A stretch of DNA of 64,000 nucleotides. It comes from Macrostomum lignano (Eukaryota). The DNA is taken from assembly GCA_002269645.1 (NCBI GenBank), contig NIVC01000112.1, forward strand, positions 1-64,000, written 5' to 3'. The notes under the pieces are model-generated. The model worked only from the letters and a program-made list of their open reading frames with translations. It had not been told where the DNA came from and ran no database searches. The number at the start of each line of letters is the position of its first letter. The first letter of the stretch is position 1. This document shows, piece by piece, positions 2,990 through 64,000 of the stretch. The position numbers and the translations under genes were made by a program.

Positions 2990-3006
2990 TAGACCGACAG
3001 ACACAC

Positions 3007-3043
<37 letters not shown>

Positions 3044-7564: not shown

Positions 7565-7601
<37 letters not shown>

Positions 7602-7620
7602 GCCTGTCTGCCTGTCTGCC

Positions 7621-7653
<33 letters not shown>

Positions 7654-7676
7654 GCCTGTCTGTCTGCCTGTCTGCC

Positions 7677-7721
<45 letters not shown>

Positions 7722-7740
7722 GCCTGTCTGCCTGTCTGCC

Positions 7741-7773
<33 letters not shown>

Positions 7774-7776
7774 GCC

Positions 7777-7809
<33 letters not shown>

Positions 7810-7828
7810 GCCTGTCTGCCTGTCTGCC

Positions 7829-7861
<33 letters not shown>

Positions 7862-7884
7862 GCCTGTCTGTCTGCCTGTCTGCC

Positions 7885-7929
<45 letters not shown>

Positions 7930-7948
7930 GCCTGTCTGCCTGTCTGCC

Positions 7949-7981
<33 letters not shown>

Positions 7982-7992
7982 GCCTGCCTGCC

Positions 7993-8030
<38 letters not shown>

Positions 8031-8064
8031 CCTGTCTGCCTGCCTGTCTGTCTGTCTGCCTGTG

Positions 8065-8109
<45 letters not shown>

Positions 8110-11100
8110 GCCTGTCTGTCTGTCTGTCTGTCTGTCTGCCTGTGTGTCTGTCTGTCTGTCCGTCTGTCTGTTTCTCCGCCCTTCCATCTTCTCACTCATC
8201 GCCGTCAAGCGGTCTAAGGAGCCGGACCCCGGTCTCTGGATTGGAATCGCTAACGGGCAGGTCAAAGATGTGGTGGTGGTACAGCAGCTGGCTCATGCTG
8301 TGGTGGCGCTCCTCCGATGGCAGCACCTTGAACCCGCCGCTCTGCTCGCACACCTGATAGGTGGCCACCCGTCTGCCAGTCTGCACGAGCAGCAGAAACA
8401 GTTTAAGCGGCTTGCTGGATGTGAAACCAACAACGCAGAAAGTGCCGCGCGGGTTTGGTAGAGCTTCCTGTTGGGAAATTTGAGGGTCGTTTTAGTATCT
8501 CGGGCTCTCTAGAGTAACTGTTGAGGGCACCTGGGTGTCCTGGATGTCTATACGTCTCACATGACCTGTTTTTAGGTCAGTTCCGTAATCCCAGACACAG
8601 CCAATGAGACACAGCCACCAATGAGACACAGCCAATCAGACACAGCCAATCAGACACAGCCAATTAGACACCGCCAATCAGACACAGCCAATCAGACACA
8701 ACCAATTAGACACCGCCAATCAGACACAGCCAATCAGACACAGCCAATTAGACACAGCCAATCAGACACAGCCAATCAGACACAGCTACCAATCAGACAC
8801 AGCCAATTAGACACCGCCAATCAGACACAGCCAATCAGACACAGCCAATTAGACACCGCCAATCAGACACAGCCAATCAGACACAGCTACCAATCAGACA
8901 CAGCCAATCAGACACAGCTAATTAGACACCGCCAATCAGACACAGCCAATCAGACACAGCTACTAATCAGACACAGCCAATCAGACTCACACAGTAGCTT
9001 CAGCCGCTTGTCCAGCCGGGTTCTGATAGGCCTGATAGAAATATCTCACTGACGCGTCGATCGGCTGGTAGCTGGTCACCATTTTCTCCAGCCCGCCAGC
9101 GGCAGAAGCAGAAGCAAAACCAGAGGCAGCTGTAGCGGCAGCAGGCAATCGAGGCTTCGGTGGCAGCGGCTGCTGCGGTCGTGAAGGTCTCGAGTCATTG
9201 TTCGAAGTCATCCAGGCCTTTGCAGCAGGTGGGTCGGTGGCATCTGGAATTTCGTAGTGGTCCTCGTCGGCATGGCCGGTCGCCAGTTCAGCCGACGGTT
9301 GTGGAGACTCCGTTGCCTCATCGTAGACCTCTTCCACCTGCGATTCAGACTGCCTGTTGGCTAAGGCTGCCGTCATTCCAGAATCCATGGCGTCATCGTA
9401 GATCGCCTCATCGGCCGGCGTTTCAAAACTCGGCTGCGGATCGTCCGGAATCTGCCTGGGTAGCGTGCCGAACGACTCTTCGTAGGAGTTCGGTTTGGAC
9501 TTTTTGAGGCCGAGGTTGGCGAACGGGAACTTCTGATGGTATTGGGGGGGGGGGGTTGCAGTTCCGTGAGGGCCGCATGCGACACAAGCGGCTTTTCCAG
9601 CTCAGCATCAGAAGGGATGGGTTTGATGAGGATCAGGTGATAAGAGATAGGGTGTAGCAGGTGATGCTGAGGATATGTGGATGGAGCAGGTGATGCTGGG
9701 GAACTGTGGATGCAGCAGGTGATGCTAAGGATCTGTGGATGCAGCAGGTGATGCTGAGGATCTGTGGATGGAGCAGGTGATGCTGGGGAACTGTGAATGC
9801 AGCAGGTGATGCTGAGGATCTGTGGATGGAGCAGGTGATGCTGGGGAACTGTGGATGCAGCAGGTGATGCTGAGGATCTGTGGATGCAGCAGGTGATGCT
9901 GAGGATCTGTGGATGGAGCAGGTGATGCTGGGGAACTGTGGATGCAGCAGGTGATGCTGAGGATCTGTGGATGCAGCAGGTGATGCTGAGGATCTGTGGA
10001 TGGAGCAGGTGATGCTGGGGAACTGTGGATGCAGCAGGTGATGCTGAGGATCTGTGGATGCAGCAGGTGATGCTGAGGATCTGTGGATGGAGCAGGTGAT
10101 GCTGGGGATCTGTGGATAGAGCAGGTGATGCTGGGGATTTGTGCATGGAGCAGATGATGCTGGGGATCTGTGGATGGAGCAGGTGATGTTGAGGATCTGT
10201 GGATGGAACAGGTGATGCTGGGGATCTGTGGACAAAGGAGAAGATTCTGGAAGGAGATCAGGTCGAGTCTCTACCTACAAAATCCCTGCAAATAATTTCA
10301 AACCTTCGGCGTTCGCCTCGGCAGCGGAATGTCGTGCATGCTGTCCAAGTTTGTCCCGTCCGCGCTGTCGCTTTCTCCAGAGAAGGCTCCGTTGTCTTGG
10401 GCAATGGAGTTTTCGCCAGCTTCTGCTGCTTCAAGAGCGTCGGCTTTGGCCTGCGAGCGCAGCGCGATCATCAACCTGCGGTAGGCCAGCAGACCTTCTT
10501 CGCGTCGACGCCTTGCCAGCTCGTCAAGCTCGGCGGACTTGCCCTCCCGGCCTCCGACGCTGTTCTTCAGGGGCCGCTCCCAGCTGTACGCGTCCGTCCA
10601 GCCGAGCTCAAGCTCGCCGCTGGACTCGGGCCGACACACCGTGGCGTCCGTGCGAGCTCGCAGCCGGCAAAACAGCATGCCCTTCGGCCTGTGGTGTCGC
10701 TTCTCCATCGAGTCGAAGCTGTGGTTGGTTGGTTAGTTTTTCGGTTCGCGGTAAACATCGTGAAATTGCCTGCTCCATGCACAGCTCCCCAGCATCACCT
10801 GCTCCATGCACAGCTCCCCAGCATCACCTGCTCCATGCACAAATCCTCAGCATCACCTGCTCTATCCACAGATCCCCAGCATCACCTGCTCTATCCGCAG
10901 ATCCCCAGCATCACCTGCTCCATGCACAAATCCTCAGCATCACCTGCTCCATGCACAAATCCTCAGCATCATCTGCTCTATCCGCAGATCCCCAGCATCA
11001 CCTGCTCTATCCACAGATCCCCAGCATCACCTGCTCTATCCGCAGATCCCCAGCATCACCTGCTCCATGCACAAATCCTCAGCATCACCTGCTCCATGCA

Positions 11101-13810
11101 CAAATCCTCAGCATCATCTGCTCTATCCGCAGATCCCCAGCATCACCTGCTCTATCCACAGATCCCCAGCATCACCTGCTCTATCCGCAGATCCCCAGCA
11201 TCACCTGCTCTATCCGCAGATCCCCAGCATCACATCCTCCATCCGCAGATCCCCAAAATCACCTGCTCCACCCGCAGATCCCCAGCATCACCTGCTCCAC
11301 CCGCAGATCCCCAGCATCACATCCTCCATCCACAGATCCCCAGAGTCACCACCCGCAGATCTCCAGCATCACATCCTCCATCCACAGATCCCCAGAATCA
11401 CCACCCGCAGATCCCCAGAATCACCACCCGCAGATCCCCAGAATCACCACCCGCAGATCCCCAGAATCACCACCCGCAGATCCCCAGCATCACCTGCTCT
11501 ATCCGCAGATCCCCAGCATCATAGGAGATAGGAGTGCTAATAGGAGATCTGTTGTTGTTAAACGGGTGTGGGAAGCCGGGGGCTACCCGCGGATCAGCTC
11601 TGGGAGGGGCTCTGCCGCTGAGGGGCACTTCCAGGGGCCTTAGCCCGAGATACCCCGAGGTTGGACCCTGACGTCTGGGCCAGGGGAGCTACTAACCCAA
11701 GCCTTATGGACTAAGACACCGCCAACCCAATATTAGTGGAATCAGGGACGGTGCAAGGAAATTCCACCCAGGCCACCACCCAGCAGACAGATCTCGGGAG
11801 TGCGCGAAAAAATAATTGGAATAAAAAATGTTTGGGTTACTACTGAAAGCGGTCCGAGAGCAGGGAATATCCTGAAGTCTTAAATGGCTTAATATTGGAG
11901 TGAGTCTGGAAGGCTTGTTTCCGAGAGCGAGTCTCCTGTCAAGGGGTAAAAGCTCCTAAAATCCTCTTATAGGGCTGCAAGCCTCAAGGGTATCACTTAT
12001 CCAGCTCTATATTGGAGGCCAGGCCAAGGGGGCGGCGGAGAGGGGCACAAGGGGCAAGAGGAAACCGGACTCAGCCGGTTTTCCCCGATTCGGGACGAAC
12101 ATCCAGCCCAGCTAGGACTCCAATCCACTGTCAGAGATGAGAGCCAAGACACAATAGGCAGGGAGACAACCAGAGGAGACAACAGATGGACCGGGCAGGT
12201 AGGGCAGAGCTCATAACTCCAAGATTTGGAATGGCAATCTAATGGTCGGGTAAAATACAAAGGGATAAAAACACGGGGATGCCAGCCCAGATAAAAACAC
12301 AAAGAATGGCAGAATGGGAGGAGCACCTGAACCCTAACCCGGGGCCAGCCTCAGGGGGGGGGGCTCAAGTCCCGTTCTAGCCACACTGCAGTCCAGATCT
12401 CCAACTCACTCCAGGTACACCCCCCCCCCTAACCCAAGGCCGAGGGCCAAATTGATTGGATAGCAATAAAAAGGGTTATTTTTAGATCAGGCACAGCCCC
12501 TCCAGGGCGGACCCTAAGAACATTGGGCTAGCGAGAGCTAGGCCAATTGAATTGCGCACAACCCGAGAAATGCCATCTTTCGTCTCACTCTTTCTAGCAT
12601 TGAACTGAAGCCTTCCATTATGTAATATTTTGCTTAGTGTAGCCTACTTATAGTAGCATCTCATAAATGTATCCCAGTTATAAATTTTCTCTACAAGATC
12701 GAGAAATCCGCTGAAATCATAACAGTTTAAACAAATTGGAAGCTTACTAGTATTGGCACAGCAGGTGGTACTTTTGACAAATTGCAGACTTCTCGGCGTT
12801 GCGGAATAAAAACAAATGACCGGCACGGATCACCGCCCAGTAGTGGCACCCTGGGGTGTGGAAATTGAAGATTGTTACAGTGCTTACAGACCCCTAATCT
12901 GGTACAGTGCTTACAGACCCCTAATCTGGTACAGTGCTTACAGACCCCTAATCTGATACAGTGCTTACAGACTCCTAATCTGGTACAGTGCTTACAGACC
13001 CCTAATTTAGGTACAGTACAGGTAACAATCTGGTACGGTACAACTAGACTCCAATCTGATACAGTACAGCTAGACTCAAATCTGGGTACATTACAGATAG
13101 ACTCCAATCTGGTACAGTACAGGTCACAATCTTGTACAGTATAACTAGACTCTAATCTGGTACAGTACAGCTAAACTCCAATGTGATACAGTACAGGTCA
13201 CAATCTGGTACAGTACAGCTAGACTCCAATCTGGTACAGTACAGGTCACAATCTGGTACAGTACAGCTAAACTCCAATGTGGTACAGTACAGCTACATGT
13301 AGACTTTAATCTGGTACAGTACAGGTCACAATCTGGTACAGTACAGGTCACAATCTGGTACAGTACAGGTCACAATCTGGTACAGTACAGGTCACAATCT
13401 GGTACAGTACAGGTCACAATCTGGTACAGTACAGGTCACAATCTGGTACAGTACAGGTCACAATCTGGTACAGTACAGGTCACAATCTGGTACAGTACAG
13501 GTCACAATCTGGTACAGTACAGGTCACAATCTGGTACAGTACAGGTCACAATCTGGTACAGTACAGGTCACAATCTGGTACAGTACAGGTCACAATCTGG
13601 TACAGTACAGGTCACAATCTGGTACAGTACAGGTCACAATCTGGTACAGTACAGGTCACAATCTGGTACAGTACAGGTCACAATCTGGTACAGTACACAA
13701 GCTCTTACATTGATCCTCTTTGTCGTCATCAAACCAGTCTCTCAAACAGATGAAGCCTTTGTACAGCACTTTGCTGTTGTCATTGGGCAGAATTTTGTCA
13801 ATGAGGCCAG
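4941..13810 (-). CDS. PH-like domain + Tyr/Pro-rich linker + three tandem degenerate SH2 domains (SH3BP2-like architecture); 5' end not found
   Basis: Exons in transcript order: 13810-13709, 12850-12748, 10718-10304, 9532-8991(or 8993), 8467-8196, 7108-7049, 6961-6841, 6529-6384, 5689-5437, 5036-4941 (TAA). All junctions are AG/GT and phase-compatible except 8991/8467. PH-like: VLYKGFICLR..WCHYWAVIRAGHLFLF..ELELGWTDA. SH2-like: PRGTFCVV..HSMSQLLYHH; PSGTFAAV..KFSSLEELLVHY; RGGSVLI..TFDSLEKLMLY. Confidence 0.75.
5140..5400 (+). mobile_element. tRNA-derived SINE-like element
   Basis: A-box-like TGGTCAAGCGCGG and B-box-like GTCTCGATTCC, followed by the body shared with 3866-4110. Confidence 0.45.
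5791..6073. mobile_element. Small intronic foldback/MITE-like element with ~35-bp imperfect inverted repeats
   Basis: CCAATCAGCGATGGGGAGGCCCTGGAGGCGGGGTG (5791-5825) is nearly the reverse complement of 6039-6073. Confidence 0.55.
6098..6275. repeat. (TCTG)n microsatellite, intronic
   Basis: Directly visible. Confidence 0.93.
6615..6840. repeat. Intronic minisatellite of TGTCACTCTC(TT/ACTATCATTC) units abutting a splice donor
   Basis: Directly visible; ends at the donor ACTCAC (6835-6840). Confidence 0.85.
7136..8170. repeat. ~1 kb (CTGT/CTGC)n microsatellite, intronic
   Basis: Directly visible; explains five long spurious ORFs at 6921-8461. Confidence 0.97.
8590..8985. repeat. Intronic minisatellite, 14 bp unit AGACACAGCCAATC
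   Basis: Directly visible; abuts the donor at 8985-8990. Confidence 0.92.
9655..10230 (+). repeat. 29 bp minisatellite GCAGGTGATGCTG(A/G)GGATCTGTGGATG(C/G)A, left arm of an inverted pair
   Basis: Tandem units visible; reverse complement of the array at 10768-11522. Confidence 0.92.
10768..11522 (-). repeat. Same 29 bp minisatellite in opposite orientation (CAGCATCACCTGCTCTATCCGCAGATCCC), right arm
   Basis: Tandem units visible; degenerates to shorter CAGAATCACCACCCGCAGATCCC units near 11340-11490. Confidence 0.92.
12875..13697. repeat. Compound intronic minisatellite: 27 bp unit (TACAGTGCTTACAGACCCCTAATCTGG) grading into a 22 bp unit (TACAGTACAGGTCACAATCTGG)
   Basis: Both units visible; they share AATCTGGTACAGT. 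Confidence 0.92.
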
Positions 13811-15602: not shown

Positions 15603-17506
15603 GTTCATGACAGCACTGACATCCGAGGTCCCATCATCAGGCAGACGCGGCTCAACATCGAGCGACTCAGCAGAAACCGGAGGCCCACAGGCGACGCTGA
15701 AGATGCATTTGAGCGCCTTCTAGACGAGCGGCAGCAGGCCGCTGTCGACGACGCCATTAGGTCCATCACTGCAGCCGGCCCCGACGTGAAGAGCCGCGCA
15801 GTGTGGACGGCCGTCCGGACTCTGACGGGGCGCAAAAAGCGCGTGGCGCTGAACCTGGCCGGCGACACCCCGGAGGAGCGCAGGAATGAATTGCGCGACT
15901 TCTTCGCCGGCATCGTGAACGCGCCCGCGTCGCCGCTGCCCGCCAGCTTTGCGCTCCCACTGGACACGCCGCTCCCAGCTGAGGAGGACTTCTGCACCAG
16001 GCCAGTCACCACGGAGGATGTTGTGCTGTACGCTCGGAAAACATCAGGCGGCAAGGCGCTCGGCCCCGATGAAGTCCCGGTCGAAGCGCTGCGGCTCCGC
16101 TGTGTGGCCTCCCAGGTCACAGGCGTCATGAACCGCGTGCTCGCCGGCGCTCTTGCGCTTACCGAGTTGACAGTCGCGCACATCGTGCCGATCCCAAAGA
16201 AGGCAGGGACAATGCGGAAGGAAGACCACCGCGGGATCTCGCTGATGTCCTGCACCGCGAAGCTCTTCAACCGGCTGCTGCTCGATCGTCTGCAGTCGGT
16301 GCTGGACCCGTACCTGCGGTACGAGCAGAACGGATTCCGGCCGCAACGCGGTACAGTGACACAGATCCTCGCACTCCGCCGTGTCATCGAGGAGGCGCGC
16401 ATCCGCCAGTCTACGCTGATCATTGTCTTCGTTGACTTTCGAAAGGCGTTTGACTCGGTGTTGAGAGCCGCGCTTCCCTTCGTCCTTCGAGCCTACCGGG
16501 TACCCCAGCAGCTAATCGACGCTGTCATGGCGCTGTATTGCGATACTCGAGCTGCTGTGGTGACGGCGGACGGCCTGTCTGACCTGTTCGATACCTCATC
16601 AGGAGTTCTGCAGGGCGACACGCTAGCGCCGTTCCTCTTCGTTCTGCTGCTGGACTGGGTGCTTCGGACCGCACTCCCCTCGGCTAATGACGGCTTCCTG
16701 CTGCGCAGACGCATCGGTCACCGCCACGGCGAAAAACGCCTAAGCGTGCTTGGCTACGCTGACGACCTCGCCCTCCTGTCCTCGTCCGTTGAAGGCGCCC
16801 AGCGCCAGATTGACAGGCTGGTCGAGGTGGCATCGAGCGTTGGTCTGATCGTCAACACGCTGAAGACCGAGGTGCTGACTGTGCCGGCCGACATCCCAGC
16901 GGACCTGACATGTCGCTTCGCAGACGGGCAGACGACCAGGCTCGCACGCTGCCAGCGCGCGGTTCACCTACCTCGGCGGTCTGGTGCCCCACGTGGAAGG
17001 ACCTCCGGCGGCGCAGAGGACTTGCCTGGGCGGCCTTTTGTTCGATCCGGGCCGTCCTCCAGTCCGAAGCGCTGCCCGACCGCCAGAGGGCTCGGCTGTG
17101 GCAGGCGGTGGTCGAAACCGTCCTGCTATACAACGCCGAGACGTGGACGCTGAGGGCTACGCTAGAGCGGCAGCTGGACTCGGCGCACTCAGGGCTGCTC
17201 CGTGCGGCCTTTCGAGCTGACGAGAGCGTCGGGACCGAGGCCCTGTACGATTGGGCCAAGCTGCAGCGCCCGTCCATCATTCTGCGCCGGCGGCGACCTC
17301 AACTGGCGGGTCACGTGATCCGGGCTGAGGGCTACTGCCCCCAACCTGTTCAGGACTTTCTGCTGCTCACCTTGCAGGGTCCGTTCAGGCGGGGTCAGGC
17401 CCGAACCCGTCGATACGTGGACTGCCTGCTGTGCGACGCTGGGGCGCCCGACACTGCCAACGGAGCGGACTTTGTTCGCTCCCAGGCTCTGCGGCGCGCC
17501 ATCTGA
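15603..17506 (+). mobile_element. 5'-truncated non-LTR retrotransposon (RTE-like) reverse transcriptase, frameshifted
   Basis: RT motifs in ORF 15786-17153: GKALGPDEV, PIPKK, RGISLMS, EQNGFRPQRGT, FVDFRKAFDSV, GVLQGDTLAPFLF, LGYADDL (YADD 16755-16766). FTYLG and DLRRRRGLAWAAF continue in other frames after shifts at ~16955-17000; stop at 17506. No endonuclease domain present. GC-rich relative to flanks. Clade assignment is tentative. Confidence 0.88.
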
Positions 17507-19527: not shown

Positions 19528-30148
<10,621 letters not shown>

Positions 30149-31656: not shown

Positions 31657-34600
31657 CTAGCAGTCCTCCCGTCCGTACATATCCTCAATCGCCTTTCTGT
31701 AGCGGTCCAGCAGCTGCCGCCGGCGCAGCTTGAACGAGTCGGTGACGAGGCCAGACTCCGGCAGCCAGGCGGTCTCAGCGCACAGGTGCACCCGGGCCGG
31801 AGTCTCGAACCGCTCCAGCCGACCCTTGGCCGCGGCGGTCAGCTCGTCTAGGGCCGCCTTTCTCAGCCGAGGGTCGGACAGCAGCGCCTCGTCCGGCTGG
31901 AGCCCGTCGCCGTTGGCGTGGCTCTGACCGCCGCCTGTGGCGTCAGTTGGCACTGGCCGGAGGCCCAGCTGTTGCGCCAGCTGCATCAGCCGGCGTCGTT
32001 TCGGCACAACCAGCAGCACCACGAAGTCGCGGCGACTGTCGGCATAGGCGCACAGCTGCTCCACAATTGGCGAGCTGCTGAGCGCCAGCTCCACCTTGCC
32101 CAGGGACACGTACTCGCCTCCCTGCGGCAATGGTTGATAGAGTTGGCATCGGGCACATCATGACACCGATAGCTCACTGATATTCCAGATTGGAACAAAG
32201 ACTAATTTGATAGCTCACTGATATTCCAGATTGGAACAAAGACTAATTTGATAGCTCACTGATGTTCCAGATTAGAACAAAGACTAATTTGATAGCTTAC
32301 TGATATTCCAGATTAGAACAAAGACTAATTTGACAGCTCACTGATATTCCAGATTAGAACAAAGACTAATTTGATAGCTCACTGATATTCCAGATTAGAA
32401 CAAAGACTAATTTGACAGCTCACTGATATTCCAGATTAGAACAAAGACTAATTTGATAGCTCACTGATATTCCAGATTAGAACAAAGACTAATTTGATAG
32501 CTCACTGATATTCCAGATTAGAACAAAGACTAATTTGATAGCTCACTGATATTCCAGATTAGAACAAAGACTAAGTTGATAACACACAGCATAAAAACAA
32601 AGACTAATTTTGACTGATAAACTATTAAACAAACAAAGACCCACCTGCAGCTTGACCAGGTCTTTCTTCCTGTCCACAATCTGCAGTCCGGCTGTCCCGG
32701 CCACCTGTCCAACATCGCCGGTGCAGAACCATCGCACGCCGCAGCCGTCAGTCCAGAAGTCTTGGCCGGTCAGCTCGGGCATTTGAAAATACCCGGCCGT
32801 TACGCAGGGCCCCCCGATGAGCAGCTCGCCTCTCGGCCACGGCTTGTCCGCCTTGGAGTAGCCGCCCTCCGGCCAGTCCCGCAGGCGCAGCAGGCAGGAG
32901 TCCAGCGGAGGCCCGGCCGAGCCCAACGGGGTGGCGGCCAGCGGCTGGTGGCCGGGCCCGGGGCTGGCCTGTATGCAGCCGGCGCCGCAGGTCTCGGTGA
33001 GGCCGAAGCCCTGCACCACCGGGCTGCCGAATGCCGACATGGCGAAGGTGTGCGTCTCGGCCGACAGCGGGGCGCCGCCGGACAGCATAAGGCGCAGCCG
33101 GCCGCCCAGGATAACGCTCACCTGCGGGAGTTTTGGTGTGGGATTTTTTGGGTGTGGGATTTTATGGTGTGGGATTTTATGGTGTGGGATTTTATGGTGT
33201 GGGATTTTATTATGTGGGATTTTTATATGGGATTTTTTGGTGTAGGATTATTTTATATAGGATTTTTTGGTGTGGGATTATTTTATATGGGATTTTTTGG
33301 TGTGGATTTTTGTATATGGGATTTTATGATGTGGGATTTTTATTTAGGATTTTTGGTGTGGGATTTTTCGATAAGGGATTTTAGATGCGGGATTTTTTTA
33401 TGTGGAATTTCGGGTGTGAGTCTTGTTTTCGAGACTTTTTTGATTCCACATCTATGGGATTTAAACGCGGAGTTTATACAATTGTATAGAGATTTCCTCA
33501 ATCGGGTCTGCTTTACATGTACATTCGTATTTTGATTTCAAATATGCGCAATACCCGGCCTTACCTTCTTAAATACCAGCCGGTCAAGCAGCGGGGTGGC
33601 CCAGCCCCGCAGTCCCCAGCGAAGTTTGTAATCCAGCGCCCAGGTCAGCAAGGCGCGCCGATGGCGCCGCGCGCCTCTGCCCGGTCGCGAACAGCGCGCG
33701 AGGCGCGGTCCAGCACTGCGGGCACGGCGGCCATCAGGCTGGGCCGCAGTGCGGTGGCGTCGCCAGGTGTGCCAGGCTTCACCTGCCGGGCAGTTTGGAG
33801 GCTTTGATCTTGCCGACAACCAATTAATTACATAACTGGAGGCTTTGATCTTGTCAATTACCAATTAGTTAAAAAAAACAGGACTTTTTGATCTTGCCGA
33901 CAACGAATTAGTTAAATAACTGGACTCTTTGATCTTGCCGACAACTAATTAGTTAGAATAACTGGACTTTTTTATCTTGCCGACAACTAATTAGTTGAAA
34001 TAACTGGACTCTTTGATTTTGCTGACAACTAATTAGTTAGAATAACTGGACTCTTTGATCTTGCCGAAAACTAATTAGTTAGAATAACTGGACTCTTTGA
34101 TCTTGCCGACAAATAATTAGTTAAAATAACTGGACTCTTTGATCTTGCCGACAACTAATTAGTTAGAATAACTGGACTCTTTGATCTTGCCGACAACTAA
34201 TTAGTATTCACCGCCAGGCAATGCCTCGCCTCACCTTATTGGACGCATCCGTCAGCGTCAGCGGGCTGCCGTAGCCGATGGCGACTCCGCAAGCCAGACA
34301 AGCCAGCTCAGCTGCCAGCTCCAGCACGTGAGCCAGCGGCAGGTAAGCCAGGTAGCTGTCATCGGCCCGACTCCCCAGCTCGGGAATTCGCCTGGCAACG
34401 CCGGCTGCCATCGCCAGCAGGTTGGCGTGGCTGATCATCACTCCCTTAGGCTGGCCCGTGCTGCCACTGGTGTACATCAGCACGGCCAGGTCGCCCGGCT
34501 CCGACACCGCCGCCGCCGCTGTATCGTCCTCCGTCGCATCGTCGACATCCTCGCCAATCAGCTGACTGAGTCCGACCAGCCGCACCGACTGTCGACTTTC

Positions 34601-36886
34601 GGCAGGCCTGCCCGACACTAGTGCCGATTCATCGCCAACTCCGCCGTCTAGGTAGATGACGCACCGGATGTTGGGCATCTGATCCAGCATCTTGGTGACC
34701 TTGTCCAGCAGGCTCAGCGAGGTCACCAGCACTGCAGCCTCCGACTGGTTGACGCCGTAGGCCAGGGCATCCTCGCCCAGGCTGGCGTACAGCGTCACCA
34801 CGGGCAGGCCGCAGCGGAAGCAGGCCTGAGCGCACAGCTGCCAGTCTGCCCGGGTCTCCGCGTACAGAGCCACCCGAACGCCGGGCCTGAGGCCGAGCTG
34901 CTGCTGCCGCTGCGAGCGGAGACTCTTGGCCAGTTGAATAACCCGACGGTGAACTGAGCGATAACTCAGCCAGCTGTAGGGGCCCAGCGACTGCTTCTTG
35001 AACTTGCGACCGTCTGGTTGAAGCTGGTGAGGGGGTTCAGATGTCGATGGCTCAGTCACGGGGTTGAGAAACTTTTCGTTATGATAGTTAGATACGCTGG
35101 GAGTCTATGATGACTCTTTGACTAAATGAGTGACTCTATGACTAACGGAGTGACTCTATGACTAACGGAGTGACTCTATGACTAACATAGTGACTCTATG
35201 ACTAACGGAGTGACTCTATGAATAACGGAGTGACTCTTTGACTAAATAAGTGACTCTATGAATAACGGAGTGACTCTATGACTAACGGAGTGACTCTATG
35301 ACTAACGGAGTGACTCTATGACTAACGGAGTGACTCTATGACTAACGGAGTGACTCTATGACTAACGGAGTGACTCTATGACTAACGGAGTGACTCTATG
35401 ACTAACGGAGTGACTCTATGAATAACGGAGCGACTCTATGACTAACAGAGTGACTCTATGACTAACGGAGCGACTCTATGACTAACAGAGTGACTCTATG
35501 ACTAACGGAGTGACTCTTATGACTAACAGAGTGACTCTATGACTAACAGAGTGACGCTATGAATAATGGAGTGACTCTTATGAATAACGGAGTGACTTTT
35601 TGACTAAATGAGTGACTCTATGAATAACGGAGTGACTATGATTACTGTAATGATTTCATGACTGCTTGGATGACTGAGACTTCATGACAATCAAATTGAC
35701 CTCATGACTATGAACTGTGGCAAACACTGACTAAATAACAAGGACTCTATAGAAATTTACAACAATCCGAATTCAATCTACGTATATTAAGCAATCAAGC
35801 CCTAAAAGCAGATTACGAGCGTACAAATAAAATCTTGATCATTTTCATTGGTTTGTAATGAAAATTTTCAAAAAGTCACCAAAAAGCCAAAAATCAAATT
35901 CAAAGTGTTCGCTAAAATATTTAGACTAAAAAATTCAGGCCAAGTGTGAATTATCAGCACACAGTTAGCTCGTACAGCAGCCCTTCAAAGCAAATTAATT
36001 GCAATTTTGAGAAGCAATTTTGCCGCTAAGCAAGCGCAGGTGAATTGCACAGCCAAACAGAGTTAATATCTGTATGTATGCAGTACCTGAACTGTCAATG
36101 GGACAGTCTGTGACTGTCTGAGCTGGTGTGCGATCTAAATCTGAAAATTTTTTATACAGTCATGTTTAATAAGGAAGATGCAGAAATGCAATTTGGGATC
36201 CAATGAATGTCTTAAATAACTGTCTGTCTGTCTGTCTGTCTGTGTGTCAGTCTGTCTTTCTGTCTGTGTCTGTCTGTCTGCCTGTCTGCCTTAGTGTCTA
36301 TCTGTCTGTCTGTCTGTCTGCCTTAGTGTCTGTCTGTCTGTCTGTCTGTCTTAGTGTACCGATCAGTCTGTCTGTAATGAAACAGTTCAGATTCAGGCCA
36401 ATTAAAAATTCAACAAACCTGCTATAAAGTTCACAAAGTCCCTCAACTATTGAACTTACAGTTACTCAAAATACGAGCAATATCAATCGACCAGCATTAG
36501 AAGCTCACCTCGTCTGCCTCCGCCAGCAGCTGCCGGGTGCCAAAGCAGCGCCGCTCGGGGTACTTGCCAGCCGCTTGATCCAGCAGATCTGCCAGATTCT
36601 CAACTCCGGCAAAGGGCCTGCTAGCCAGACAGTCAGGCACTGACTTGCCAGTCTCCGCAGCCGCCTGCGCCACAGCTGAGCTGGCCCACACAGCTGGGCA
36701 GCTGCCATCTTCATCAGTTCCCGGATAGTCAACTTTCACGGTAGCTACTACAGCCTGTTGTTTGCTACTACTAACAGTAGTCGAATTTGGCCAAAATGTC
36801 AAATTAGCGGCATAGTATAGAGGCAGTGTGACTAGACTGTACAATCCTGATACTGCATCCATAGACCAGATTAAAAAGTTTTGCAT
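31657..36886 (-). CDS. ACSL3: Long-chain fatty acyl-CoA synthetase, ACSL3/ACSL4 type, 5 exons
   Basis: Exons 36886-36509, 35023-34235 (LMYTSGSTGQPKG, YLAYLPLAHVLEL), 33782-33565 (1-nt shift near 33655), 33121-32645 (SGGAPLS, QGFGLTETCG, WFCTGDVG, IVDRKKDLVKLQ), 32121-31657 (GEYVSLGKVE..LVTDSFKLRR). ACSL3 versus ACSL4 cannot be resolved. Confidence 0.9.
32165..32590. repeat. Intronic minisatellite, 41 bp unit
   Basis: GATAGCTCACTGATATTCCAGATTAGAACAAAGACTAATTT, about ten copies. Confidence 0.93.
33130..33420. repeat. Intronic degenerate ~15 bp repeat (TGTGGGATTTT..)
   Basis: Directly visible. Confidence 0.85.
33800..34205. repeat. Intronic minisatellite, 42 bp unit
   Basis: GATCTTGCCGACAACTAATTAGTTAGAATAACTGGACTCTTT, about nine copies. 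Confidence 0.92.
35100..35640. repeat. Intronic minisatellite, 20 bp unit ACTAACGGAGTGACTCTATG
   Basis: Directly visible. Confidence 0.94.
36220..36372. repeat. (CTGT)n microsatellite in ACSL intron 1
   Basis: Directly visible. Confidence 0.9.
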
Positions 36887-41791: not shown

Positions 41792-43828
41792 TCAGGCAGT
41801 CTTGGCCGGCCTGGCGAAGTCCTCGGGCATTGGCAGGGCCGGGCAGGGCCACAGAAACTGCAGCAGGCCGCAGCGGCCGAACACCCTGGCGCAGTTTCGC
41901 CTGCAGCTGCCCAGCGACATCTTCGGCGCCGACACCTCGGCGAACTCGTGCGGCGTCTGGCCGCGGCAGACCAGCAGCAGTTGGAAGAAGAAAAAATAAA
42001 AGCTCGCCAAAACGCCGAATAGCGTAGCGAATAACAGCGTCACCATGGCAACCACTGAAGCGTCGGCGTTGCCGGTAGCATACAGAACGACAGTAATGGG
42101 ATAAAAGTACATCCAGATATTCACGGACAGGGCTGGCTGGAACACCCTGGCCAGGTACAGGTACTGCAGACAGACGCACAGGCTGCTGCCCAGCAACACA
42201 TGGAGCATCAGGGGGAGGAAATGCCGGCGGTTGCACCGGCCGATGCAGCAGGCGGTGAAGAAGCAGTGGTGGTCGTGGCCGAGGACGCACACGCGGCAGA
42301 GTGGGCAGTGGTGCGCGCCGGGTGGCCTCTTGGCCCGGCAGTGCAGGCAGAACTCCGCGTTGGCCAATCCGGAGTAGCCCAGAACGGTTGAGGACCCGTT
42401 AGTTGACGCCGGAGTGCGAGCGAAGGCCGTGCTGGTGGCGCTGTTGCGGCGGGATGTGCGCAGCACAGCGAAATAGTTGGCCAGAACCTGCGGGTAGGCG
42501 GTTTTGCCGGTTATGACGCCTGGGACATTTCTTGGAAAATGAATAGATTTTTCTATGAAAAGATATATAAATCATGGGTTCTTCGAAACAAATCCGACGA
42601 TTCTTAGAAACTAACCAGACGATTCTTGGAAACCAACCTTGCTATTCTTAGAAACTAACCACATAATTCCTAGAAACTAACCACATAATTCCTAGAAACT
42701 AACCACATAATTCCTAGAAACTAACCACATAATTCCTAGAAACTAACCACATAATTCCTAGAAACTAACCACATAATTCCTAGAAACTAACCACATAATT
42801 CCTAGAAACTAACCACATAATTCCTAGAAACTAACCACATAATTCCTAGAAACTAACCTGACGATTCTTAGAAACTAACCAGACGATTCTTAGAAACTAA
42901 CCAGACGATTCTTAGAAACTAATCAGACGATTCTTAGAAACTAACCAGACGATTCTTAGAAACTAACCTGACGATTCTTGGAAACTAACCAGACGATTCT
43001 TAGAAACTAACCAGACGATTCTTAGAAACTAACCAGACGATTCTTTGAAACCAACCTTGCTATTCTTAGAAACTAACCAAATAATTCCTAGAAACTAACC
43101 AAATAATTCCTAGAAACTAACCACATAATTCCTAGAAACTAACGACATAATTCCTAGAAACTAACCTTACGATTCTTGGAAACTAACCAGACGATTCTTA
43201 GAAAATAACCAGACGATTCTTGGAAACTAACCTGACGATTCTTGGAAACTAACCTGACGATTCTTGGAAACTAACCAGACGATTCTTAGAAGCAAAAATC
43301 ACTATTCTCAGTAAGTTTACTTCAGGTTTTTGCTTCAAATTATTTGATGATTTTCATAAATCAAGTTGAACTGTTACTACGAAACGAATCTAACAGATTC
43401 TCGTGAACGAATCCAGGTGATTCTAAGAAATCGAAACGAATTAGATCGGGAAATTCTTAGAATCGAATCAGAGATTTTTTGAAGCGAATAAGATCGACTT
43501 TTAGAAACTTTTTATAGTTACTTCGAGAAAAGTAATCAGGCCGTTTCTTAGAAATAAAATAATTTTAGAGCAATTATTCATTTTTCATGGTCTTATTACT
43601 ACACTGTTCCGAAAGAGTGGAAGCTCAGGTGTCTAGATAAGATATTCTTACCTCGGCTATGACACAGTACAGCAGGAGCCGCACACAGCCCGGACTCGCC
43701 AGATCCCCATCCGCTGACAGTCTCGGCAGCACCAGCAGATCTGCGGTGAAGAAGCAGGCAGCAGTGACGCCGAAAAAGTACACCACACCGGCCGCGTTTA
43801 ACAGGTTGAGGCTGAGAGCGCGCTCCAT
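41792..43828 (-). CDS. ZDHHC22: DHHC palmitoyl-S-acyltransferase, ZDHHC22/24 type, 2 exons, ~290 aa
   Basis: Exons 43828-43652 and 42487-41792 join in phase 0. Cys-rich domain FCLHCRAKRPPGAHHCPLCRVCVLGHDHHCFFTACCIGRCNRRHF, hydrophobic segments, and a TTxE-like QTPHE. DHHCFFT favours the ZDHHC22 group. Confidence 0.85.
42590..43290. repeat. Intronic minisatellite, 22 bp unit (C/T)TAGAAACTAACC(ACATA/AGACG)ATTC
   Basis: Two variant blocks visible. Confidence 0.93.
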
Positions 43829-45105: not shown

Positions 45106-47559
45106 ATGAAGCTACCAAGTGTTCTCCTGTCCTACCTGAGCATACTGCTCCTAGCAAAATCGGCGCAAGGAAATTTCACGGCCAAACAAAAGCGAATCCT
45201 GCAAGACATCTACCAGGTAGTAGCGCAAGATTTTCACTACAGGCGACATGAATGGAACTCCTTAGCTGTGAGGTACACAGGATTTTTGCACTTCTTTGGC
45301 ACCAGTTGGCGCTTAGTAACCAGACTCGGCGGCACGTACAGCGTGGGCTCGTCCACCTACTACAACCGGTGGAACTGGGACCAGGCGCTAGAAGAGTCCA
45401 CTGAGCTTCTGCGCAGCCTAGAAAGGTACCACCGAGTCTATAGACACCTCAGCTGGAATGGAGACAAGGAGCTTCAAGCCGAGTGGTACAAGCGCAATCC
45501 CAGGCACTGGTCGGACGCTGTCACCTTTCTAGACTTTATGTCGAGTCGGTCTGGCCAGCTGCACAATCCGGCAGGCGCTGAGGTGCCGGGCTATTTATCA
45601 GCCGATCGTAAACAATATGACGAGCTGCTTCGACTCGCCTACAGCGGCTATACTGCCTGTCCCTCAGCTCTGGCCAACGTCACCCGTCAGCTGTTGGATT
45701 CGACAGTCCAAATAATCAATGAAACCAGCCGTCAAGTGGACGCGATGCTTTACGAAGACGAACCATTGTCAAGAAACCTATCGGACTCAACGAACACTTC
45801 AATTGCAGACGACGCAGTCATACAACTAGTGTCGATAACAAGCGAATACAACCTCCTGTCTGGCCTAGTCTGGGACACAATGCCAGCGCTGATAGCTAAC
45901 TATTCCCAATCGATAGCAGACTCGCCAGCGGGCTGTCAGAATCGCACAGGCCCGATGTCGACAGAGCAGCTGACCAGTCGAGCTAACAACATTAGCCATG
46001 CCGTGGCTAGCCTAGGGCGACAAGTGCTGGCCCACGTGCTGCTTTTTATGCAGCACTATCAGGAGCACTGGTCTCAATGCTGCACTGATAACAAGATTTC
46101 CGAACCCGATCTCACTAATGAGCAGCGGGCGAGTCTACTAGCATTCTATTGCCGCGTATTGCAAGAAGACATTGACAAAGACTTAGCTAGGCACCTGGAG
46201 ACGGGCGAGATGACGCAGCTAAGGCAGCTGTTGGCTACTTGCAATCAGGCGACGGTCACTGGCGGCAGATGCTACAGCATTCTGGCCGACCTCTGGCATC
46301 AGCTGCGGAGGAAGATATCTCGCGAGTACTCGGCCTTTCAGCAGTACTCAAACCGCATACCAGCCATCCTGCAGGCGAAATCAATCATGAAGTTTGTCCT
46401 CCCAATGCTGGCCGTGGTTGGCTCCAGCCTCAACTTCGTCATCATATTGTATTACGCCAGACATACGCAGGTACGAAAGGTTGGTCGCAATTTTTTAATA
46501 GTATTGCTGGCCTGCTTTGACACTAGCATACTTATCGCATCGAACTTGGTTTTATTCACCGACAAGTACATGGAGCACGATCAAGAATTGAAGCCTAATG
46601 GAGCAACAGATATCTGGTGCAAATTTCAAGTCTATTTACTAAACCTAACAGTTGAATCTAGCGCATTCACGGTGGTAATCCTCAGCATAGAACGTTTCCT
46701 AGCCGTCCACTCGCTCTTCAGACAGACTTCATCAACAGGCGCACGCAAAGAGCTGCCATTCAGGCAACTGGCCATTCTGTCATTGTGCGCATTCTGCTTT
46801 GCCTGCATATTTAACTGCATGCTGATCATCGGAGACGAAATCGCTGCACCGGCTAAGTCAACAGTTGGCCGCCAGTGCGTCCAGTACGTCAGGCTGCAAA
46901 ACTTTCGCACCAATTTAGCATTTGTAACGCTGGTAAAGCCGGTGTTAAACGCTCTGGCCAGAAGCCTCCTGCCTTACAGTTTGGTCTGCGCTCTCAGCCT
47001 GGCAACCTGTTGGTTGCTATTCAAGAAAGGCGCTTATCAGAGTTTGCGCAACGAAGAGCACGGAATGCAGCAGCAGATGGAGGAACCAGCGGTACCTGCA
47101 TCGCCAATGCAACAGCAACAGTATCAGCAGGATGGCCAGCTAAGCAGAGCAATTGGTCAGTTGGGTCTGGCGCTTGCCTACCTGGTGCTTACAGCTCCAG
47201 CGCCTGTGATCTACACAATGTTCATGACGGCTCACGCGGACCGTCTCATAGTTAAACTGTCCAACGGCCTGTACGACGAAGTAGATCCGGCATTTCGAAC
47301 CCACTGGAGCCGCATCGGGCAGCTGACGGTGGCTCAGTACGCCACAGAGTACGTGCTGGTACCGCTTAGCGCGTCTATCAACTTCTGGGTATTCTACATC
47401 ACTGACAGGTCCTTCCGAACTTATGTCAATGGCTGCTTCGGCTCAGCCAGAGGTTCCGCAACGGTTGCAACAGGCGACTACGACGAGGGGATGGCAGCGG
47501 CAGCGGATGCCAACGAGGAGTTGACCGACTGCTATGAACTGCACACGGAGACTCTGTGA
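45106..47559 (+). CDS. Intronless class A (rhodopsin-like, peptide-receptor type) GPCR with signal peptide and very large ectodomain, 817 aa
   Basis: Uninterrupted ORF. Signal-like MKLPSVLLSYLSILLLAKSAQG. Seven hydrophobic segments start at ~aa 428, with GSSLN (TM1), LACFD (TM2), WCK..SIERFLAV (TM3), LPY (TM5), VLTAP (TM6) and SINFWVFY (TM7). Confidence 0.88.
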   Translation: MKLPSVLLSYLSILLLAKSAQGNFTAKQKRILQDIYQVVAQDFHYRRHEWNSLAVRYTGFLHFFGTSWRLVTRLGGTYSVGSSTYYNRWNWDQALEESTELLRSLERYHRVYRHLSWNGDKELQAEWYKRNPRHWSDAVTFLDFMSSRSGQLHNPAGAEVPGYLSADRKQYDELLRLAYSGYTACPSALANVTRQLLDSTVQIINETSRQVDAMLYEDEPLSRNLSDSTNTSIADDAVIQLVSITSEYNLLSGLVWDTMPALIANYSQSIADSPAGCQNRTGPMSTEQLTSRANNISHAVASLGRQVLAHVLLFMQHYQEHWSQCCTDNKISEPDLTNEQRASLLAFYCRVLQEDIDKDLARHLETGEMTQLRQLLATCNQATVTGGRCYSILADLWHQLRRKISREYSAFQQYSNRIPAILQAKSIMKFVLPMLAVVGSSLNFVIILYYARHTQVRKVGRNFLIVLLACFDTSILIASNLVLFTDKYMEHDQELKPNGATDIWCKFQVYLLNLTVESSAFTVVILSIERFLAVHSLFRQTSSTGARKELPFRQLAILSLCAFCFACIFNCMLIIGDEIAAPAKSTVGRQCVQYVRLQNFRTNLAFVTLVKPVLNALARSLLPYSLVCALSLATCWLLFKKGAYQSLRNEEHGMQQQMEEPAVPASPMQQQQYQQDGQLSRAIGQLGLALAYLVLTAPAPVIYTMFMTAHADRLIVKLSNGLYDEVDPAFRTHWSRIGQLTVAQYATEYVLVPLSASINFWVFYITDRSFRTYVNGCFGSARGSATVATGDYDEGMAAAADANEELTDCYELHTETL

Positions 47560-48419
47560 ACCCTGCGATATCTATGACCTTATATAACCGTGACTATTTG
47601 ACAATTTCACTTAAGTCACATGACACTGAAGCCTCCTGGCAATTTTTTCTTGAACCGTGAATATTTGCACTTTAAAATGTTTCTGTGAAAACTATCATCA
47701 CGCATCTAAAAACTTTGTACACTCTTTATTATTTATAAATATATCCTAGCAAGCACACTTATGAAAGCACTGATGAAAATAAAAACGTTGCTGGAAATCT
47801 TCAGATAGATTTCCTTGGCATAATTCTGATTTAAATATAGTCTAGAAAAAATAAAGCTCGGCAATAAGACCGTGTCTAAGAGACAGATTATATCACTTCA
47901 TCTTCTGCAATCCTATTTGCGTGTCGCGATGATTTAAATAGCAATAAACTGAAAAAAAAACTCGGAAAATTTCAAAGCTGAATCAAGATGAAGGATTTAA
48001 TCACGTAATCAGAATGTATATTTAGAACTCAGCTTCGTAATCAGCAACGAAAGCTCAAACATACAGCCCTAATTATTGGGGACACGAGATTTGCCCGCAG
48101 ACGAATTGCCCGCCGAGGTTTGCCAGCAATGCTTTTTCCCTGCAGCGCATTGAGCTACAGATGTAGTTAAAAAATGAATGGCTCACAGATGCGCCCCTCT
48201 ATGTATATGGAAATGAAAAAATACAAGAAGAATATGCATTTAATATGCAGTTACCATCAAAACGTTTTTATCGGGTAAATCTTTTATTAAGAATTACTAA
48301 GCATTGGATGGGGGCAATGCAGAAATAATCAGCCACGTGGCAAAGTGCGCTGCAGCAAAAAAGCATTGCGGGCAAACCTCGGCAATTCTCTCATCATCTC
48401 TTTTCCCGTACCTTCATCT

Positions 48420-49290
48420 TCCCTGATCCCATCTCTCTCTTCTCTTATCCCTCACTCTCTTCCCGTATCCCCACTCTTTTCCCTTATCCCTCACTCTCTT
48501 CTCTTATCCCTCACTCTCTTTCATTATCTCTCACTCTCTTCTCTTATCCCTCACTCTCTTCCATTATCCCTCACTCTCTTCTCTTATCCCTCACTCTCTT
48601 CTCTTATCCCTCACTCTCTTCCATTATCCCTCACTCTCTTCTCTTATCCCTCACTCTCTTCCCTTATCCCTCACTCTCTTCTCTTATCCCTCACTCTCTT
48701 CTCTTATCCCTCACTCTCTTCTCTTATCCCTCACTCTCTTCTCTTATCCCTCACTCTCTTCTCTTATCCCTCACTCTCTTCCCTTATCCCTCACTCTCTT
48801 CTCTTATCCCTCACTCTCTTCCCTTATCCCTCACTCTCTTCTCTTATCCCTCACTCTCTTCCCTTATCCCTCACTCTCTTCTCTTATCCCTCACTCTCTT
48901 CCCTTATCCCTCACTCTCTTCTCTTATCCCTCACTCTCTTCTCTTATCCCTCACTCTCTTCTCTTATCCCTCACTCTCTTCCCTTATCCCTCACTCTCTT
49001 CTCTTATCTCTCACTCTCTTCCCTGATCCCTCACTCTCTTCTCTTATCCCTCACTCTCTTCCCTGATCCCTCACTCTCTTCTCTTATCCCTCACTCTCTT
49101 CCCTTATCCCTCACTCTCTTCTCTTATCCCTCACTCTCTTCCCTGATCCCTCACTCTCTTCTCTTATCCCTCACTCTCTTCCCTGATCCCTCACTCTCTT
49201 CTCTTATCCCTCACTCTCTTCCCTGATCCCTCACTCTCTTCTCTTATCCCTCACTCTCTTCCCTTATCCCTCACTCTCTTCTCTTCATTC
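48420..49290. repeat. Pyrimidine-rich minisatellite, 20 bp unit CTCTTATCCCTCACTCTCTT
   Basis: Directly visible; explains ORF 48345-49226. Confidence 0.96.
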
Positions 49291-62680: not shown

Positions 62681-64000
62681 TCACTCAGTGTAACTCTTCT
62701 TCTCGTGGATCTTCTTGATGACGTCAATCTTGCTGCTGAGACCGCTCCTCAGCTTCTTGTAGGGCTGCTCCTGGGTTCCGTGGATCACCAGAACCCATTC
62801 GCTGATCACTCCGTGGACGCTGGCGTCGGTGGCATCAAGGGCGACCTTCAGCTTCCATTTGCCGCGAGGTGACTCGCCCCACATGTGCGTCGTCATGAAG
62901 GGCCAGGAGGTAAATCCAACCTTGCTGTCCGCGTCCTTCGGGCGCTTGCTCAGGATGAGCGAGGTCGTACCGGTCGGGGCAGTCAAGAACACGGTGACGT
63001 CACCGCGCCTGGTGGACTTCAGCGTGATGAAGGCCTGCACGTGCTCGATGTAGTTGATGCGGTGCTTCGGATCGTCCTTGCAGGCGTCAGTATCGATTTC
63101 CATCTCGATGGCATTCTGCACGTTGAAGTGGTAGAGCCTCTTCACTTCGCCAGCGATGCAGTGGAATCGCTCCGGCACAGTCTTCCAGTCCCTGGCCGTC
63201 TTCACGATGTCGCCAGCGTCAAGAACTCCGTAGCCGAACAGGTGGTTGAACTCCAGGCCGGCTGAGTTGACAGTCCAGTCGTGCTTGCCGTTCGGATCGT
63301 ACAGGTGGTTTCTCTTGGAGGTCAGGACCACCAGGTGCTGCATGTCGCGCCAGGTCAGGTTCGAATTGGCCTCCAGGGCCAGAGCAAACACGCCAGCGGC
63401 CTCGGGAGCGGCGGCGCTGGTGCCGCTGTGATGCAGGGTGCACTTTCCGTACAGGTCAACCGTGGCAACTCCAGCGTCCAGAGTCGAAGCCTTGCCATTG
63501 GAGAAGGTAGAGGCCAAGGTGGAGGAGCAGGACTCATCGTACAAAGCGGTCTCGCCATCGTTGGTGGCAGAGTTGATGCTGATGGTCCACATGCTGGCGG
63601 CGTAACCATCGCAGTTGCAGTCGTCGTCCGGACCACCGTCTCCGCTGGCCCACACGAAGATGCTGCCCTTGCCGTTCCTGCCCTTGTTGACGCCCTCAAC
63701 GATGGCGCGCATCGTCTCGTTGCGCGGACCGTCGACAGTTTTGCCATCGTCAGTTGGGCCCCAGCTGGCGGAGTAGATGTCAATGATGTCCCGCTTGTAG
63801 GACATGGCGGCCGCCTCGATCAAGTCGGTCATGTAGGGCTGGTCGAGCATCCTAAGGCCGGCAATTTTGCTGCCGTAGGCAACACCGACACCGCAGATTC
63901 CGTTATCACGCTTGGACGAGATTTCGCCGGCGCAGCGGGTGCCGTGGCTGTTGAACCAGTCGTCGGTGTAGCGCGGGTAGGGGTACGGATCGTTGCTGCT
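62681..64000 (-). CDS. PCSK2: Prohormone convertase 2 (catalytic and P domains), 5' end beyond the window
   Basis: A continuous frame reads SSNDPYPYPRYTDDWFNSHGTRCAGE (catalytic His), VWASGDGG (PC2-specific Asp in the oxyanion hole), HSGTSAAAP (catalytic Ser), RRGD in the P domain, and KKSYTE*. Confidence 0.96.
   Translation of the reverse strand, partial: SSNDPYPYPRYTDDWFNSHGTRCAGEISSKRDNGICGVGVAYGSKIAGLRMLDQPYMTDLIEAAAMSYKRDIIDIYSASWGPTDDGKTVDGPRNETMRAIVEGVNKGRNGKGSIFVWASGDGGPDDDCNCDGYAASMWTISINSATNDGETALYDESCSSTLASTFSNGKASTLDAGVATVDLYGKCTLHHSGTSAAAPEAAGVFALALEANSNLTWRDMQHLVVLTSKRNHLYDPNGKHDWTVNSAGLEFNHLFGYGVLDAGDIVKTARDWKTVPERFHCIAGEVKRLYHFNVQNAIEMEIDTDACKDDPKHRINYIEHVQAFITLKSTRRGDVTVFLTAPTGTTSLILSKRPKDADSKVGFTSWPFMTTHMWGESPRGKWKLKVALDATDASVHGVISEWVLVIHGTQEQPYKKLRSGLSSKIDVIKKIHEKKSYTE

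Follow-up and report, generated by a model that had tools for sequence, protein, structure and literature searches.

Few G-protein-coupled receptors (GPCRs) of class A carry a large structured ectodomain, and those that are well known are dominated by leucine-rich repeat (LRR) types: the glycoprotein-hormone, LGR and relaxin receptors have a class A seven-transmembrane (7TM) bundle behind a large glycosylated ectodomain of LRRs, with or without LDLa, which folds, binds the ligand and couples to the bundle via a hinge and the extracellular loops (ECLs). GPR37 and GPR37L1, endothelin-B-receptor-like orphans, are class A receptors with a long N-terminal ectodomain without a recognised domain, and adhesion GPCRs combine a GAIN/GPS autoproteolysis domain with a class B-type bundle (7tm_2). 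Flatworms have in addition PROF1, a divergent flatworm-specific family “exclusively derived from intronless genes” which retains remnants of class A motifs (Zamanian et al. 2011, PMC3261222), the PROF1/Srfb rhodopsin-like orphan receptors also being treated by Saberi et al. 2016 (PMC4862687). Here we describe a gene in a 64,000-nucleotide stretch of contig NIVC01000112.1 (positions 1 to 64,000 of the forward strand, the window, whose numbering is used throughout) which rather probably, in our view, is a single gene without introns encoding an orphan class A receptor restricted to one lineage, probably flatworms, whose unclassified ectodomain is glycosylated and probably helical. We read it as lineage-restricted because its sole ectodomain relative is in a free-living flatworm.

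The gene is one open-reading frame (ORF) of 817 uninterrupted codons, from the ATG at 45106 to a TGA stop at 47557-47559, with an upstream in-frame stop region which ends nine bases before this ATG; the intronless frame reported in an earlier reading made from the letters of the window (which we refer to as the sequence-only reading) is thereby confirmed. By chance, 817 open codons would occur with P = 3e-19 (window stop-codon frequency 0.051, all frames). There are zero stop codons from the signal peptide through to the 7TM domain, therefore translation from ATG 45106 must yield an ectodomain-7TM fusion. The N- and C-terminal halves of the gene have a GC content of 0.53 and 0.51, a GC content at third codon positions (GC3) of 0.62 and 0.61, and for each half a codon-usage cosine of 0.838 in-frame to the neighbouring conserved exons vs. 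0.59–0.68 in the other two frames; given the missing stop and the matching codon statistics, both halves read as one coding unit.

The protein begins with a signal peptide (MKLPSVLLSYLSILLLAKSAQG, with the cleavage point before NFT) followed by an ectodomain of ~405 amino acids (aa), residues 23-427. It contains eight N-glycosylation sequons (NFT23, NVT191, NET205, NLS224, NTS230, NYS265, NRT279 and NIS295), vs. 3.07 ± 1.57 expected (20,000 shuffles; P = 0.0046), and seven Cys (185, 277, 325, 326, 349, 379 and 389), the peptide, sequons and Cys all being present as the sequence-only reading had listed them. The N-terminal half holds eight of the nine sequons in the protein (binomial P = 0.018), the ninth lying inside transmembrane helix (TM) 3. 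The ectodomain can be divided into three parts, an N-terminal module in which Trp, Tyr, His and Arg are abundant (motifs YQVVA..F.YRRHEW, YY.RWNW and YHRVYRHL), a glycan-rich centre and a membrane-proximal helical region (see table); no internal repeats were found in it.

A Pfam search of aa 1-425 gave no match, and LRR, LDLa, cadherin, EGF and GAIN domains were not detected, in agreement with the sequence-only reading, which had recognised none of these. Searches with the whole ectodomain and its thirds at E ≤ 10 returned only noise at 12–14 bits (DUF4714, FAM194, Wtap, DUF6559) and a PDB profile search with the ectodomain had no match, thus neither Pfam nor PDB placed a known GPCR-associated domain in it. 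The sole ectodomain relative in an exhaustive phmmer search of 1.84 billion representative proteins was a protein of Macrostomum lignano, the only organism named for any ectodomain relative (UniProt A0A1I8FML4, hereafter P0001; E 2.8e-29), of which aa 215-344 share 47–48% identity with aa 31-163 of the window protein (BLASTP 2e-37). When 5.8 billion clusters were searched by alignment, no further ectodomain relative was found; JGI metagenome contigs, scanned for ectodomain and for 7TM patterns, yielded no confirmed relative; and repeat searches with ectodomain and masked-7TM alignments returned only P0001 and the 7TM relative P0002 described below. A word-indexed search with the whole protein had no match, P0001 included, its candidate list having probably been swamped by the Gln-rich third intracellular loop (ICL3). 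Exact look-ups returned neither the window protein nor P0001. Paralogues sharing the ectodomain, which the sequence-only reading had proposed to look for, did not materialise: none of the receptor is present within the 64-kb window and only the P0001 module was found elsewhere in the databases searched.

The public name of A0A1I8FML4 is “Autophagy-related protein 27”, and its gene model is a merger. Its aa 1-182 are an Atg27/MRH-type protein (precomputed Pfam PF02157, PF09451), and aa 183-345 open another gene, for a secreted protein or a receptor, in which a second signal peptide (MPGPLLLALLMLPGALG) immediately precedes the conserved module. The similarity to the window protein extends to the very last residue of P0001, hence the model is truncated at its C-terminus. 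A sequon just past the signal-peptide cleavage point is conserved between the two (NFT in the window, NGT in P0001). As the module is conserved at 47% in an M. lignano protein with its own upstream signal peptide, start codon and ectodomain are truly coding, and as there is no Atg27-like gene upstream of the receptor in the window, the two loci are not syntenic. Together, the comparison of the sequences supports the view that the ectodomain is genuine and translated, is a domain not recognised so far, and is joined in frame to a 7TM of class A type.

The ectodomain is predicted to be all alpha-helical and matches no described family. AlphaFold2 of the whole protein with no alignment reached a mean predicted local distance difference test score (pLDDT) of 37.5, and of the ectodomain with a two-sequence alignment a pLDDT of 43.5 and a predicted template modelling score (pTM) of 0.34; at this low confidence, both runs place ~12–13 helices at nearly equal positions with zero sheet in the ectodomain, and its last helix extends to TM1. 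The helical character suspected in the sequence-only reading is therefore echoed by both runs, at low confidence. The AlphaFold and Foldseek comparison it had suggested matched no known fold, with models that are unusable for fold assignment: a Foldseek search of the PDB with the ectodomain model returned nothing at E ≤ 0.001, with a best query-normalised TM-score of 0.28. Matches to CorA, vinculin and syntaxin (TM-score ≤ 0.28) are generic helical bundles and were rejected as meaningless.

The C-terminal half is a class A 7TM domain, as the sequence-only reading had it. Pfam PF00001 (7tm_1) scores 38.6 bits with the whole protein and 40.4 bits with the C-terminal half, above the gathering cut-off of 30.5, and the match spans profile positions 2-190 of 260; no 7TM family besides 7tm_1 was found by Pfam, GAIN/GPS and 7tm_2 being searched for and not found. 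From about aa 428 onwards there are seven hydrophobic segments. The class A anchors are kept, namely N443 (N1.50), D472 (D2.50) in LACFD 468-472, the disulphide pair of Cys505 (3.25) and Cys591 in ECL2, R530 (R3.50) in ERF 529-531, P623 (P5.50), P698 (P6.50) in LTAP 695-698 and N759 (N7.49) in NFWVFY 759-764, and the microswitches W4.50, W6.48, P7.50 and Y7.53 are lost. ERF, LTAP, NFWVFY and a TM4 without Trp had been read from the letters exactly as we find them. Intracellular loop 1, with 4 K+R and zero D/E, is strongly basic, ECL1 is acidic and so is the tail, in line with an N-out, C-in topology (positive-inside rule). Class A receptors do not usually have a long, conserved ECL3, and here it would be the best candidate for contact between ectodomain and bundle. 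Cys777 in the tail is a candidate palmitoylation site.

Relatives of the 7TM half are few: among the 1.84 billion representative proteins only seven matched the receptor at E ≤ 0.001. The only close one, P0002 (E 2e-15), comes from an environmental contig of 1044 nt (L001; ENA ERZ21788738 ctg10629l) and shares 31% identity from TM5 to helix 8 (BLASTP), or 39% over aa 679-775 (phmmer); the frame of L001 is homologous upstream of the called start of P0002, across TM5 and ECL2, to the end of the contig. Common to both proteins are LT.P.P.IY in TM6, an ECL3 of ~39 residues with DPxFRxHW, YATEY(V/I)L(V/I)PL where TM7 begins and a helix-8 DR.FR, P0002 having LTCP in TM6 and TVLIL in place of the NFWVF of the receptor. 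A stop at the second codon of L001 (positions 1-10), aligned with the end of receptor TM4, could reflect an intron acceptor, an error at the end of the contig or a pseudogene. As judged from the databases searched, the architecture is rare, with three partial or complete sequences.

The nameable kin are distant. P0004 and P0006 are allatostatin-A-receptor-like (E ~2e-4), the best PDB match of the single sequence is KiSS1R (E 0.037), closely followed by opioid, apelin and beta-2 adrenergic receptors, and that of the two-sequence family profile is the endothelin B receptor (E 0.011). The “peptide-type” label of the sequence-only reading finds some agreement here, the best matches being of allatostatin-A, KiSS1 and endothelin-B type, but at E-values of only 1e-4 to 0.04 and with beta-2 adrenergic receptors close behind it suggests a weak leaning and not a classification. 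Allatostatin-A, galanin and kisspeptin receptors are thus the nearest nameable 7TM kin, with a marginal similarity confined to TM1-TM3/4, and they keep W6.48 and NPxxY, short N-termini and a short ECL3, in all of which the receptor differs. Two further matches are intronless: P0007 at 3001-4065 of a 67-kb contig (L002; ENA ERZ25069296) and P0005 at 32-976 of a metagenome scaffold (L003). These two of the seven matches bear motifs of the T6.48/F7.50 type, as the receptor does.

The likeness to PROF1 bears on the question of whether the 7TM half is new. The receptor, like PROF1, is intronless and an extremely divergent class A protein, with Thr for Trp6.48 (..T.P) and Phe for Pro7.50 (NF..[Y/F]) and no significant homology outside its lineage, its only identified relative being from a flatworm. 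It could accordingly be a PROF1/Srfb group II member with an acquired N-terminal extension, in which case the 7TM would be known and only the ectodomain new; we regard this as unlikely. The published group II motifs are [F/V]...T.P in TM6, [N/D]F..[Y/F] in TM7, DR[L/V] in TM3 and [L/I][A/T]..[H/N] in TM2 (PMC3261222), and T at 6.48 and F at 7.50, which the sequence-only reading had taken as peculiar, are both part of this signature. The receptor reads Y-LVL-T-A-P in TM6 (T and P fit, with Y for F) and N-F-WV-F in TM7, which fits, and an alignment to the hidden Markov model (HMM) places LTAP on the group II LT.P; P0005 and P0007 share these motifs. However, ERF in TM3 and LA..D in TM2 are both off motif, and the group II signatures DDFLGRGL (ECL1) and LS[RK]LFSS.KD are absent from the receptor. 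We built profiles from the 36 PROF1 sequences of Additional file 7 (18 from S. mansoni, 18 from Schmidtea), with groups by the authors' tree (PMC3261222). Against the 14-sequence group II profile the window 7TM scores 52.7 bits, yet the outgroup controls P0006 (allatostatin-A-receptor-like) and P0003 score 50.1 and 58.8, and P0005 and P0007 score 51.3 and 72.7; with a profile of S. mansoni sequences only, the receptor falls to 23.2, below both controls (37.9 for P0006, 47.1 for P0003) and with P0005 at 51.8 and P0007 at 35.8. Scores against groups I and III are 3.2 and 13.1 bits, and the best pairwise PROF1 score is 23.5 bits vs. 37.9 for the allatostatin-A-like control. As the control receptors match the PROF1 profiles as well as or better than the receptor, so that the profile signal is not specific, PROF1 membership was rejected. 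The 36 PROF1 proteins also differ in their length (~190–490 aa) and short stretch before TM1, where the receptor has its ~405-aa ectodomain, and the receptor further departs from them in its ECL3 of ~39 aa. The likeness, which is at motif level only, may reflect distant kinship or convergence. Separately, PROF1-like receptors seem to be present in environmental eukaryote assemblies, given the 72.7 bits of P0007 and the motifs of P0005.

Two other explanations concern the origin and the product of the gene. To the sequence-only reading, the lack of introns hinted at retroposition or gene fusion, and a recent retrogene or fusion, perhaps drifting and without a conserved signalling role, would be in keeping with an intronless gene amid split neighbours, with a GC3 below that of the neighbours, with the loss of several class A microswitch residues and with the reverse-transcriptase ORF found elsewhere in the window. 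Nevertheless, there is no poly(A) tract 3' of the receptor gene, the flank being AT-rich with AATAAA signals, no direct repeats or target-site duplication bracket it, the ORF is intact across 817 codons, and both ends are conserved at 31–48% identity elsewhere, implying age and purifying selection. Intronless genes are moreover the norm for divergent flatworm class A receptors (PMC3261222), P0007 being intronless on a 67-kb genomic contig, so an argument for retroposition from the lack of introns loses its force. A recent retroposition is unsupported, an ancient one possible, and we hold a recent, drifting origin to be improbable. Still less probable to us is that the long ORF misleads, with a product of only the 7TM from a downstream start, or with ectodomain and 7TM as separate products. 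It would draw on the relatives, of which the ectodomain homologue P0001 is known only as far as the module, before any 7TM, and the close 7TM homologue P0002 is a fragment without an N-terminus. Set against this are the open frame and the codon statistics common to both halves, the position of all ectodomain sequons in the part which GPCR topology places outside, and the nearest internal Met, M428, which is the first residue of TM1 and would leave no N-terminal segment; a 7TM-only product therefore appears unlikely from the ORF.

Several observations nonetheless weigh against our reading of the gene as that of an intact fused receptor with a helical ectodomain. The single-transcript status of the gene is read from the ORF, and P0001, the only ectodomain relative, is a truncated model that ends before any ectodomain-7TM junction. 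W6.48, P7.50 and Y7.53 are lost in the receptor, and P0002 is additionally without N7.49, therefore canonical G-protein activation may be altered or absent. The GC3 of 0.61–0.62 is clearly below the 0.76–0.83 of the conserved neighbour exons (34208-35059, 41792-42466 and 62681-63850), which fits a young, weakly expressed or fast-evolving lineage-specific gene. The AlphaFold2 models (pLDDT 37.5 and 43.5) are unreliable, and “helical” is a low-confidence statement about secondary structure only.

If the gene does encode an ectodomain-bearing class A receptor, it differs from each of the described systems with large ectodomains. No LRR or LDLa was found in it even at E ≤ 10, its ectodomain is predicted all helical and its 7TM is not specifically related to that of the LGR-type receptors, which sets it apart from these despite the shared arrangement; from adhesion GPCRs it differs in having 7tm_1 only. 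The N-terminus of GPR37 is not as long, and much of it is unstructured or undergoes proteolytic processing, whereas that of the receptor looks folded and helical, and no significant similarity emerged between GPR37/GPR37L1 and the receptor, the match of the family profile to the endothelin B receptor reaching only E = 0.011; the comparison is a lead only. GPR37 is all the same an exception to the LRR rule for large class A ectodomains, so this rule as given in the sequence-only reading is broadly right but not without exceptions.

With gene structure, topology and domain content taken as they stand, along with the narrow distribution and the conserved ends, we infer how ligand, coupling and ectodomain role might be related. 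The cleavable signal peptide puts the N-terminus outside the cell, where the Cys-free aromatic and Arg-rich module (aa 27-163) may recognise a ligand or a protein partner; the glycan-rich middle could act as a spacer, the membrane-proximal helical region and the long conserved ECL3 could relay binding to TM6/TM7, and G-protein signalling might proceed via the retained ERF arginine. More speculatively, and to our minds doubtful, the ectodomain would be a new fold which, with the long ECL3, defines an undescribed class A subfamily in free-living flatworms, a rigid helical ectodomain, in place of LRRs or the TM pocket, recognising the ligand or acting as a tethered modulator and gating a bundle which works without the Trp6.48 and NPxxY switches. 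In protease-activated receptors cleavage bares an N-terminal agonist sequence; for an orphan such as this there is no sequence rule by which to recognise such a site, and the tethered-ligand role suggested in the sequence-only reading is a conjecture. A helical glycosylated ectodomain outside all known families would, if true, be a further, independent solution by which a rhodopsin-type bundle is coupled to its extracellular part. What limits the significance is that the family comprises only three known sequences and that taxonomically restricted orphan-domain genes are common. The receptor adds to the divergent intronless flatworm class A receptors without Trp6.48 and Pro7.50, in which activation of the bundle is in question, and the divergent receptors of parasitic relatives are of interest as selective drug targets. 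That it is linked to free-living flatworms agrees with reports of large lineage-specific expansions of class A receptors in these animals (PMC11886862).

Table. Positions of the receptor gene, its parts and the neighbouring genes in the window
Feature	Position	Strand	Basis or remark
Complete intronless coding sequence, 817 aa + stop	45106..47559	+	ORF, codon usage
Signal peptide, aa 1-22	45106..45171	+	MK, hydrophobic core, then AQG, cleaved before N; read in sequence
N-terminal module, aa 27-163, conserved, without Cys, rich in aromatic residues and Arg	45184..45594	+	identity to P0001
Glycan-rich central region, aa 185-300	45658..46005	+	seven of eight sequons, Cys185, Cys277; P0001 ends upstream of equivalent stretch
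Membrane-proximal helical region, aa 301-427	46006..46386	+	Cys 325, 326, 349, 379, 389; predicted helices, low confidence
Seven-transmembrane domain, aa 428-768	46387..47409	+	Pfam 7tm_1, hydropathy, motifs
Gln-rich third intracellular loop, aa 641-681	47026..47148	+	
Third extracellular loop, ~39 aa, motif DPxFRxHW, then YATEY at TM7 start	47221..47337	+	conserved in P0002/L001
Acidic cytoplasmic tail, aa 769-817	47410..47556	+	opens with helix-8-like DRSFR
HSP70-family exon	27728-28276	+	gene also at 29158-30113 (+); introns with minisatellites
AMP-binding gene span, split	31660-35104	-	long-chain acyl-CoA-synthetase-like; minisatellites in introns
AMP-binding exons	34208-35059 and 32543-33121	-	
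DHHC exon	41792-42466	-	
Proprotein-convertase exon	62681-63850	-	

The neighbours of the receptor gene are intron-rich, as had been noted from the letters: the AMP-binding, HSP70-family, DHHC and proprotein-convertase genes are all split into exons. From their translations we take two of them to be HSP110-like and ACSL-like. An Rfam search of the window gave no match. A retroelement copy is present as an RVT_1 ORF of 455 aa (E 1.2e-29) at 15786-17153 (+). The window is dense with minisatellite arrays in introns and intergenic DNA (56 TRF rows, units of 8–44 bp, up to 129 copies), for example at 7141-8171, 22721-24098, 25556-26886, 42579-43296 and 48417-49285, with one array in the stretch that separates the receptor from the DHHC gene and a second that begins ~860 nt past the receptor stop. 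Two inverted 29-bp arrays at 9656-10232 and 10769-11402, ~540 nt apart, have units which are reverse complements save one base and could be a large hairpin-forming structure. At positions 1-258 the window opens with a 23-bp tandem repeat (AACCCTATGAGAAATCGCCCTAA) in 11 copies, with telomere-like CCCTAA/AACCCTA cores.

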